NCBI GenBank assembly: GCA_048772705.1
Contig: JBLWGC010000115.1
Coordinates: forward strand, 63,728 to 127,727
DNA from: Leidyana gryllorum EB-2025a
Taxonomy: Eukaryota > Protista > Apicomplexa
Length of the DNA: 64,000 nt
Direction of reading: 5' to 3'
The notes beneath the pieces were generated by a model. That model had not been told where the DNA came from and did no database searches. It worked only from the letters and a program-made list of their open reading frames with translations. Made by a program: the position numbers and the translations under genes. Below are positions 60,089 to 64,000 of the stretch, in pieces; position 1 is the stretch's first letter; each line of letters starts with the position of its first letter.

Positions 60089-60490
60089 TCAATCTTTGGA
60101 CGATGTTTCCTTCCCAGGGTCTACGCTTTCCGTCAGAGCAGCCGCCCACTCCTTCTCTTTGAATCCGACCAGGATTTTCCCGTCCGGAGCAATGAGCAAC
60201 GGTCTTTTCACCATTTTTCCGTCCATGGCCAGCAGCCCGACCACTTCGTCGGGGGCCATTGAGGGCAGCTTGTCCTTCACCTTCTTCTGTCTATAGAGGA
60301 CCCCATTCACATTGAAGAATGCCTTGAGTGGCAGTTTGCTCTTGGTGTGCCACTTTCGGAGCTCGAGCGCGTTCGGCTTATTCTGCACAATGTCCCTCGC
60401 CTCGTACGCAATACCGTGTTTGTCCAGCCAGGCTTTGGCCAGCCGGCAGGTACTGCAACGTGGGTAGTGGAGAAAAGTATACATTGGCAT
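60089..60490 (-). CDS. ArsC/Spx-family (YffB/YusI-like) thioredoxin-fold protein, bacterial type, intronless
   Basis: YPRCSTCRLAKAWL (CxxC), RDIVQNKP..EL, FFNVNGVLYR, LLAMDGKMVKRPLL, VGFKEKEW. Confidence 0.9.
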   Translation of the reverse strand: MPMYTFLHYPRCSTCRLAKAWLDKHGIAYEARDIVQNKPNALELRKWHTKSKLPLKAFFNVNGVLYRQKKVKDKLPSMAPDEVVGLLAMDGKMVKRPLLIAPDGKILVGFKEKEWAAALTESVDPGKETSSKD

Positions 60491-61136: not shown

Positions 61137-63189
61137 TCACTGCGCCTTGCGAGCTGCACAAGGCTTGCACTCATCAGCGGCTGGAGGTTCCGGGGTAGTC
61201 TCATCCTGCTTTTGAGTATGCAAGACTCGCGCCGTCCGAGCCACCTTGCCCTTGATCTTATAATTCTTTTGGCCGTCAACGCTATACGCGATGAAGTCCC
61301 CCAACACGGCTCCTTCATGGTCGTCAATTTTGCCGGTAAGGGTGTACGTAGTCTTCTCGCCCGGGTTCAAGCGGCGCAACTGGAAACGCAAGTCATCCCA
61401 CCTGCTTCCATCTGCGGGCTTGAGGTTCTGGGGGCGGAGTAGTTTAATGGCCGTCACTGGGTCGGGAACTCCTCCCCACAGAGTATTCGGTCGTGACATT
61501 GAAGCGACAGGAATAACTGCTTCACGCAAAACTCTTGCCATATCGTACGAATCCAGATAGGGGTTCACATTGAGTAGGAGAGCGCCTACTCCTGCCATGT
61601 AGGGGGTGGCCATAGAAGTGCCGGACTTGTCCACATACAGTGAGCGTTCGACTTTAGGGGCGCCGGTCGACCAGATAGAAGTTCCAGGAGCCCCCATTTC
61701 GACACACGTCTCTCCGTAGTTCGAATCGTATTGCATGTTTAGGTTGGATCTCATGTTGGCGACACTCAGGATGTTCGGGTAGTCCCAGCACGCATCGTAA
61801 ACCCACAGTTTCCTATTAACGGGTCCCAAACTTGAGCCGTTGTTCATGGCCGCAAAGAAGAGAGGAACTCGGTTGCGCAGAAGGCCCTCGAAAGCAGCTT
61901 TCTTTCCAATCCAGATCTCGCGACCAGGCGACTCATCGATCACCCCATACCTTTCATCACACAAATTTGCTCATTTGGTCATCTCATACACTTACGAATT
62001 GGCCGTAATATGGGCGCCGATCGACAAAGCCCAGTCCGAACACTCGGCAGTAGCGGCCTGAGTGTTCTCCAGATTGGGTCCGTAACGTCTGCAGATTGCC
62101 AATCGCACATTTGGACCTGCTACACCAGCCACACCAATGCCGTTGTTGGGCACGGCGCCGATGATGCCCGCGCAGTGCGTTCCGTGGCCGTCGAAATCAT
62201 CAGGAATCAGTCCCGTTCTGGCCTGTGTGGTCCAGCCATAAATATCGTCAATGTACCCATTTCCATCGTCATCAACACCAGGTCTCCCGTTCAACTCTGC
62301 CTCATTCACCCAGTAGTTCGCCTTCAGATCGGGGTGGTCCATATACGAGCCACTGTCAATGACTGCAACCACGGGCTTGAAATTCTCGGGCCAACCGCCA
62401 ATCTCTGCCCATGCCCCGGTGATGTTACTGTGAGAGAGGTGTGTGTGTGTACGTGGTCACTCTAAGCTCGACTTACCCCCAGGTCATCGCCCATTGGCGA
62501 CGATACTCAGGGTCATTGGGAGCCTGGATTCCCATTGAGCGAGAAGCCATCGCGGTAATCTCCGGATTGACTTCGGCAACTTCCAAGTGTTCAGGGGGCA
62601 GAGTCTCATCCTGAGCCACATCGATGATATGGAAATGTTGGCCAATAAACTTGACGTCATTAGTGATATCTTCTTGAGTACATTCGGTCACTGATTCGTC
62701 GTACATCAGTTCCACCAATCCGATGTGCCTCATCACGTGCACTCTCGGGAAGCATTTCGATCCAGCGCGCCAAGAAACATACTCGCAATCGCCTCCATGG
62801 GTTTCAAGGCAATTCTTCAGTTTTTCCGCCTTCGCTTTGATTGACTGATCTTCTGGATCAATCACGACGGTCACAGTTCGAGGACCGTTTCCCGTCATTA
62901 CAGCGCTGGCACTCGCCTCCACCTTCTCTCCAATGACGTGTTCGTCCGCTATCGTGCGGGACGATCCCGAGGAACGACTGGCACGGGCCGCCGCTACCGC
63001 GTCGCCAGGGAGAGTTTTGTTGAAGTTAAGCGCTACATCGATAGTTTCATTGCCATCATTGACCACAACAATTTCGACAGAAGCTTCCAGAGTGTCAGGA
63101 TCAACGTGAACTTGCACAGTTTCGCCCTCAATACGTAGGCCGTGAGTTACAGCAACGACTGAAAAAAGAGGCAACAAAGACAACCTCAT
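61137..63189 (-). CDS. Secreted subtilisin-like serine protease (S8A), introns ~62429-62476 and ~61951-61994
   Basis: Signal peptide MRLSLLPLFSVVAVTHG and prodomain. Catalytic triad motifs VAVIDSG, HGTHCAG, GTSMATP. Ca-binding loop NGRPGVDDDGNGYIDDIYGW. Confidence 0.93.
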
Positions 63190-63334
63190 TGTCGTTTCTA
63201 TGACTTTTGCCACAATCTTTCAACCGGCTATCGCACACGTCTCCTGCTGTCCCCTCAAGTCCCAGGCAGGCAGTGACTCAAGACCGCAAAGGATCTACGA
63301 GAATACGTGTCTAAGATCTGGTGGTCTATGGCAG

Positions 63335-63859
63335 TCACTCGTCATCGTGTACAATCTCGTCGAACTCGATGCTTTCAATACCAAGCGTGCTTTTCAGATA
63401 GTCAATGTCCTCTTCGATCTCCCACGACTTGCAGAATTCGATAGATTGGGAGTAATCTAAAACTGCTAGTCGCACATGGGCCAGTATGCGTAGTTCCGGA
63501 ATACAACGAGAGTCCAGATGCCTGACGGAGAACTGACAGCCGGTAGAGTGTGTTTTCAAGCACTTGATCACACAATCTTTCTGCTCAAGTAGCAACGGCG
63601 TGGAAGCAGTGAGTACCATAATCAGTCTATGAGGGATTGAAGGTTCTGTGCTCAGTACAGCCTTTGCCACCTCGGGAAGGTCATCAGGATGGAGATGAAA
63701 GTTGGTGGCCAACGTTGTGAGTGCGGTGGGCCTGGGAGGTGCTGTTGGTGTCTCCACGCTGGTACCCTCCTCCAGGAGGATGGGGGCAGCTCCGATGTGT
63801 GGCCCGATATGGGCTGCCAAGGCACTAGCCACGCTCAACTGTAGTAGGCTAAGCCACAT
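63335..63859 (-). CDS. Secreted stand-alone subtilisin-prodomain-like protein (putative protease inhibitor/chaperone)
   Basis: Signal peptide. The C-terminal ~90 aa align with the prodomain of the adjacent subtilisin, with four Cys conserved. Confidence 0.75.
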   Translation of the reverse strand: MWLSLLQLSVASALAAHIGPHIGAAPILLEEGTSVETPTAPPRPTALTTLATNFHLHPDDLPEVAKAVLSTEPSIPHRLIMVLTASTPLLLEQKDCVIKCLKTHSTGCQFSVRHLDSRCIPELRILAHVRLAVLDYSQSIEFCKSWEIEEDIDYLKSTLGIESIEFDEIVHDDE

Positions 63860-64000
63860 GCCAAAATACGAGGACCAGAACTACTGCTCCAGGGGCTGTG
63901 CATGCCGTGTGTGCTGTAACCACCACACACTGGGATGTCTTTACTTAAGGTTCGATGGACGAAGAAGTCTAGGCGCGGGTGTAAATCATAGACGCAGGGC

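Follow-up and report, generated by a model that had tools for sequence, protein, structure and literature searches.

What does a 174-amino-acid open reading frame encode when it lies directly upstream of a subtilisin gene, on the same strand, and resembles the prodomain of that protease? The question arises at the very end of the window analysed here, the terminal 64 kb of contig C115 (JBLWGC010000115.1) in the assembly of the gregarine Leidyana gryllorum EB-2025a (15.5 Mb, 237 contigs). On the evidence of its sequence, we conclude that this frame, hereafter UP174, is a separate, prodomain-only and probably secreted gene. By analogy with characterised apicomplexan proteins, we put at roughly 0.6 the probability that its product is a functional secreted propeptide mimic that inhibits one or more proteases of the family. 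That the neighbouring protease is its specific target would be about half as likely, and this protease is the first target candidate. The gene and its parts have the following window coordinates.

63335..63859, minus strand: UP174, prodomain-only open reading frame of 174 amino acids, a single open frame from the first ATG after an in-frame stop
63812..63859, minus strand: signal-peptide-like N-terminus, MWLSLLQLSVASALAA, by inspection
63680..63811, minus strand: proline- and threonine-rich linker, amino acids 17-60, without counterpart in the paralogues (alignment)
63338..63679, minus strand: prodomain-like domain with four cysteines, amino acids 61-174, assigned by homology
63338..63367, minus strand: C-terminal tail E165-F-D167-E-I-V170-H-D-D173-E174, with cap and P4 motifs located by structural alignment
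63900..63905, minus strand: GCATGC motif at -46 relative to the UP174 ATG, one of 11 such sites in the 64-kb window

The original prediction had described this frame as a 174-amino-acid gene at 63859-63335 on the minus strand, and its start and end proved exact: read from the sequence, the protein begins with MWLSLLQLSVASALAA and ends with ...IEFDEIVHDDE followed by TGA. It had also described the product as free of any catalytic domain, and this held, as translation stops after E174 at a site without a consensus splice donor and the protease has an ATG and leader of its own. The G+C content of UP174 by codon position (0.58/0.42/0.56) resembles that of the neighbouring genes. The signal peptide was called by eye, without a predictor; a similar hydrophobic leader opens every paralogue. 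The linker stands in place of the N-terminal beta region of the proteases.

The protease exons were queried one by one. BLASTP matched UP174 to exon 1 of the neighbouring protease with E=2e-11 and 24/104 identities, and the gap-free alignment quoted over a 70-residue stretch was recovered with all four cysteines aligned. As the sole query against the six-frame translated genome, UP174 returned 12 further prodomain matches at 11 loci (E 3.6e-12 to 5.5e-4), 10 of which are intact paralogous subtilisins (the neighbour, six genes on contig C35, two on C194 and one on C121). The four cysteines are invariant across A1, our 12-member alignment of the family's prodomain-like domains. The BLASTP match, the 11 genomic loci and the invariant cysteines together place the similarity between UP174 and the prodomains far beyond chance.

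The intact paralogues share a common layout, in which a leader is followed by a beta region ending ..ALSFNQTF..DATAVPSPG, a helix, the four-cysteine domain, an acidic linker, PNDP..QW and then a phase-2 intron at the identical place. All 10 proteases carry the four-cysteine domain between signal peptide and catalytic domain, and given the shared layout its position is exactly that of a subtilisin prodomain. The phase-2 intron, after QWxLxx, is conserved in position in every family member; its GT[AG]AG donor supplies an in-frame TGA or TAA, so naive calling of open reading frames makes each prodomain exon seem a separate gene. On C35 (275167-292000) seven SUB1-like subtilisin genes of the family stand in tandem, about 2.2-2.6 kb apart, and the seventh copy (~285 kb) is broken in its prodomain exon by two TGA codons and a frameshift.

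The topology of a propeptide of the I9 type had been expected for both segments, and AlphaFold2 bore this out. The UP174 domain (amino acids 61-174) was modelled confidently from A1, with a predicted local distance difference test score (pLDDT) of 86.9 and a predicted template modelling score of 0.80. [quoted passage not shown] The Pfam family Inhibitor_I9 (PF05922) matched neither UP174 nor exon 1 at E<=1, and none of the 12 domains at E<=10. A sequence-profile search of the PDB was blank, and Foldseek found no PDB match to the UP174 model at E<=0.001; the entry of highest probability was the PfSUB1 prodomain (0.77, template modelling (TM) score 0.61). Searches of the ESM Atlas by features and by shape were uninformative. 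A sub-threshold Pfam match to DUF7053 was dismissed as noise (13.5 bits against a cut-off of 27).

In PfSUB1, Glu209 (P9) and Asp211 (P7) act as caps for two catalytic-domain helices, Val214 occupies S4 and Asp217 is P1 (PMC4024747), and the same E-x-D and Val are found in BPN' and SUB1-ProM (PMC6993865). The tail of UP174 reads E-x-D-x-x-V, spaced as in PfSUB1, and structural alignments to 4lvo_P/4lvn_P place D173 on PfSUB1 Asp217. From this spacing and alignment, UP174 ends one residue past P1, in agreement with the expectation that it stops where a processed prodomain ends. V129, in the beta2-beta3 hairpin, lies at a conserved hydrophobic position (H-V/I-G in the family) and is, judged from secondary structure alone, a candidate equivalent of the Ile178 "plug". 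UP174 has the helix-capping Glu and Asp and a hydrophobic residue at P4 by sequence, and its tail is predicted, from the register of the structural alignment, to extend to the active site.

A search for further pairs of this kind in related genomes had been proposed. A second prodomain-only gene was found on contig C185 (C185:22973-23626, equal to L021:3974-4627, minus strand), encoding 218 amino acids arranged as a leader, the N-terminal beta region, the cysteine domain and a tail of about 25 residues. It also has an orthologue. When the A1 profile was run against 1.84 billion representative proteins, the sole match was P0001 (205 amino acids, E 1.6e-11), a gregarine-like protein from Logan contig ERR10899949_2125 (run ERR10899949; L025:422-1063, plus strand) sharing 52% identity with the C185 protein (E 4e-71). 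The flanks of the P0001 locus are collinear with C185 and the gene has the same truncated end; from the identity, the collinear flanks and the shared truncation we conclude that prodomain-only genes are maintained across species in this lineage. The pairing itself did not recur at these two loci: the C185 gene has no S8 domain on either side for about 4 kb, and none was found downstream of P0001. A 50-nt block (L025:61-108; L021:4913-4961) situated some 300 nt upstream from the C185-type gene is 88% identical between the two species, well above the identity of the coding region, and may be a conserved regulatory element, a small exon or an RNA.

The original prediction derived UP174 from a partial tandem duplication of the neighbour's own prodomain. 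Homology to the protease pro-region stands; a specific copy of the neighbour's does not emerge from the data. Across A1, the identity of UP174 to the neighbour is 19%, the family minimum, against 22-28% to the other members. The tree nests UP174 among the protease-attached prodomains, in a clade apart from that of C185 and P0001 (100/100 support), and within the former it sits on a long branch whose placement the tree does not resolve. Constraining UP174 as the neighbour's sister lowers the log-likelihood by 2.15 units, with a p-value of 0.21 in the approximately unbiased (AU) test, so a sister relation is neither supported nor rejected. This identity and this p-value neither establish nor rule out that UP174 descends from the neighbour's prodomain as a copy. 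UP174 is, judged from the alignment and tree, an old and fast-evolving derivative of a family prodomain and no recent copy of its neighbour's; by the same comparison, it is a derivative that lost the N-terminal beta region and gained the proline- and threonine-rich linker.

How might such a protein work? We propose that UP174 would be an independent single-exon gene, which would have arisen when the 5' part of one gene of the SUB1-like subtilisin family was duplicated, and that it would encode a secreted disordered linker joined to one subtilisin prodomain with four cysteines. By analogy with PfSUB1-Prodp9, SUB1-ProM and TgMIC5, the protein would be exported, form disulfides, and bind and inhibit its target. 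Its beta-sheet would pack on two helices at the surface of the catalytic domain, with Glu165 and Asp167 as their caps, and Val129 in the beta2-beta3 hairpin would plug a surface pocket. The tail I-V-H-D-D-E would occupy the substrate groove like a cleaved product, with Val170 in S4 and Asp173 in S1.

SUB1-ProM (PF3D7_0507400; Tarr et al. 2020) is a 153-amino-acid, single-exon propeptide mimic with a signal peptide; its gene lies between SUB1 and two further subtilisin-like genes, all co-oriented, and the protein inhibits PfSUB1 rapidly, potently and selectively and likewise has no sequence match to I9 (PMC6993865). [quoted passage not shown] Both proteins also have an E-x-(D/N) cap, a P4 Val and a tail ending within one residue of the processed prodomain, although relative to Prodp9 the tail of UP174 is one residue longer (reaching P1') and that of SUB1-ProM one shorter. 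SUB1-ProM has no detectable similarity to any prodomain, whereas UP174 is recognisably homologous (E 2e-11) and shares the four cysteines. Inhibition is proven for SUB1-ProM and is proposed for UP174 by analogy. The A1 profile search of the 1.84 billion representatives found no Plasmodium protein and thus gave no sequence support for orthology with SUB1-ProM.

TgMIC5, a stand-alone mimic that regulates TgSUB1 (PDB 2LU2; PMC4024747), is like UP174 a secreted, stand-alone prodomain fold from an apicomplexan, and ranked 15th in the Foldseek search with the UP174 model. The structural score is weak (TM 0.35/0.45) and there is no sequence similarity; TgMIC5 lacks the P9 Glu cap present in UP174 (PMC4024747) and is not reported to be adjacent to SUB1, whereas UP174 adjoins a SUB1-like gene. 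The best structural matches to UP174 were the prodomains that act in cis, those of SUB1 (PfSUB1 Prodp9, 4LVN/4LVO; PvSUB1, 4TR2) together with I9 propeptides (BPN'), and these were the only structural matches with 20-22% identity. They share with UP174 the topology, the N-terminal helix (PvSUB1), the E-x-D caps, the P4 Val and an acidic P1; they are held covalently in the zymogen, whereas UP174 is a separate gene with four cysteines in the alpha1-beta2 loop region and no Pfam I9 match. Free I9-family inhibitors exist outside Apicomplexa, namely yeast PBI2, Pleurotus POIA1 and Arabidopsis SPI-1. Each is a prodomain-like protein encoded alone, as is UP174, and they inhibit subtilases, but their lineages are unrelated, no such gene is reported next to that of its target, and some of the proteins are cytosolic (SPI-1 is mentioned in PMC11371169). 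The concept of a free prodomain inhibitor is thus already published (SUB1-ProM, PMC6993865; TgMIC5), and the known principle is unchanged.

Several points weigh against a functional inhibitor. The contig ends with the window, 141 nt upstream of the UP174 ATG, and when an overlapping contig reaching further upstream was sought by DNA search, only the locus itself came back. No orthologue of UP174 was found by a word-based protein search, by the profile search of 1.84 billion representatives or by a metagenome scan with the single protein, and the word-based search of the protein collection did not return even UP174 itself. Its branch is the longest or second-longest in the tree, and a search for RNA sequencing runs found none listed.

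The long branch and the lack of an orthologue, annotation or RNA run also speak for the rival that survives best, in which UP174 would be a non-functional relic, the 5' end left of a tandem-duplicated subtilisin gene after loss of the catalytic exons, now silent or decaying. The family does turn over by tandem duplication and one member of the C35 array is already broken. We nevertheless consider a relic unlikely. The frame has remained open despite about 75% amino-acid divergence, for which the chance probability is about 7e-4 (an analytic estimate for 173 stop-free codons at this composition), whereas the broken C35 copy shows visible decay at much lower divergence. The conserved core has been kept selectively: of the 23 columns with at least 80% conservation across the ten prodomains attached to proteases, UP174 retains 15, against 16 of the 96 other columns, and its changes at conserved sites are mostly conservative, a pattern that suggests a domain under fold constraint. 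Moreover, the stop falls exactly at the prodomain end, the 145-nt spacer holds no catalytic remnant, a leader of its own opens UP174, and a GCATGC motif lies upstream of it.

Could UP174 instead serve mainly as a trans-acting folding chaperone or trafficking escort for a subtilisin, rather than as a regulatory inhibitor? Subtilisin prodomains are established catalysts of folding, and the fold and interface motifs of UP174 are those of prodomains in cis. However, all 10 family proteases retain a prodomain of their own, so none obviously needs one in trans, and the known stand-alone apicomplexan mimics are inhibitors (PMC6993865; TgMIC5, PDB 2LU2). We therefore judge this role improbable. Just as improbable in our view is that UP174 is secreted against foreign subtilisins, from gut bacteria or the host, or has acquired a new non-protease function on the I9 scaffold. 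Its fast evolution and secretory leader, and the fact that gregarines inhabit guts, would fit a foreign target; yet it keeps family-specific cysteines and interface motifs that match the organism's own proteases.

The boundary between UP174 and the protease bears on whether they are one gene or two, and contains the following elements.

63190..63334, minus strand: spacer of 145 nt, from the UP174 stop to the protease ATG
63232..63253, minus strand: promoter-like block, GGGACAGCAGGAGACGTGTGCG, a motif that recurs upstream of paralogues

The core of this block, ACGTGTGCG, occurs once in the whole window and is also present upstream of paralogues C194_105k (-70) and C121 (-9), neither of which is preceded by a prodomain gene. 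Five C35 copies, the solo gene on C185 and its orthologue on L025 have a (T)GCATG(C) core placed 13-23 nt upstream of their ATG, and this core is a candidate promoter element of the family genes. A run of G often precedes the core (GGGGG..TGCATG) upstream of family genes; the L025 site is at ~405-411. GCATGC-type motifs are frequent upstream elements in apicomplexans. The spacer block and the GCATGC element are motif-level hints of two promoters, short of proof; judged by sequence features, UP174 and the protease appear to be distinct genes. That they instead form a single transcription unit, spliced or read through into a protease with two prodomains, is hardly credible: they share a strand, are 145 nt apart and offer at the UP174 stop a conceivable weak phase-2 donor (GA|GTGACT), but GTGACT is unlike the GT[AG]AG donors of 10/10 family introns, the fusion intron would need about 120 nt against 38-58 nt in the family, an in-frame stop sits 30 nt ahead of the protease ATG, a signal peptide would end up inside the product, an additional upstream exon is absent from all paralogues, and the spacer carries the upstream motif shared with paralogues. 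Splicing of UP174 into the protease was rejected on donor mismatch, intron size and the in-frame stop.

The neighbouring protease gene is organised as follows.

62477..63189, minus strand: exon 1, with signal peptide, N-terminal beta hairpin, four-cysteine prodomain (amino acids 83-193), acidic linker and PNDPEYRRQW
62428..62476, minus strand: intron 1, 49 nt, GTAAGT..CAG, phase 2, at a position common to all 10 paralogues
61996..62427, minus strand: exon 2, with catalytic Asp and His (Pfam PF00082, 7.8e-16)
61951..61995, minus strand: intron 2, 45 nt, GTAAGT..AAG, restoring the frame as ..ITANS|YGVIDES..
61137..61950, minus strand: exon 3, with oxyanion Asn, catalytic Ser, C-terminal beta-rich tail and stop (Pfam PF00082, 2.4e-13)

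Its ATG is at 63189 and opens a hydrophobic leader of its own, MRLSLLPLFSVVAVTHG; intron 2 was read by eye. The catalytic motifs are D (VIDSG), H (HGTH), N (AAMNNG) and S (GTSMA), and the best solved relatives of exon 2 include the Plasmodium SUB1 structures 4tr2, 4lvn and 8pol (E 1e-23 to 1e-25). Introns of roughly 45 nt and these Plasmodium relatives agree with a gregarine-type apicomplexan. Judged by its PF00082 match, Asp/His/Ser triad and oxyanion Asn, the gene is a Peptidase S8 subtilisin. The beta hairpin near its start (amino acids 18-44; window 63060-63140, minus strand) is predicted with pLDDT 63-73; it is kept in all paralogues and in the solo gene on C185, and is missing in UP174. 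Downstream of the protease, at a distance of 646 nt, an intronless open reading frame of 133 amino acids (window 60089-60490, minus strand) resembles the bacterial ArsC/Spx family.

SUB1-type subtilisins drive apicomplexan egress and invasion, and to our knowledge only in Plasmodium and Toxoplasma have free prodomain mimics been shown, so far, to control them. If UP174 is such a mimic, a gregarine protein that can still be aligned with its parent prodomains would show the birth of these inhibitors by partial gene duplication, and would suggest that the free-mimic strategy is widespread or old in the phylum. More speculatively, and with little confidence, the pair may be ancestral to Apicomplexa, with UP174 the counterpart of SUB1-ProM, or the module may have been invented independently at least twice in gregarines (UP174 and the C185 lineage). 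In the ancestral case, the homology of the four-cysteine domain of UP174 to prodomains in cis would be the sequence proof that the inhibitors originated by partial duplication of SUB1; independent invention, for its part, would be recurrent convergent evolution of self-directed protease inhibitors. The pair of UP174 and its protease would offer a natural, sequence-tractable case for the study of inhibitor/protease specificity in an expanded family.

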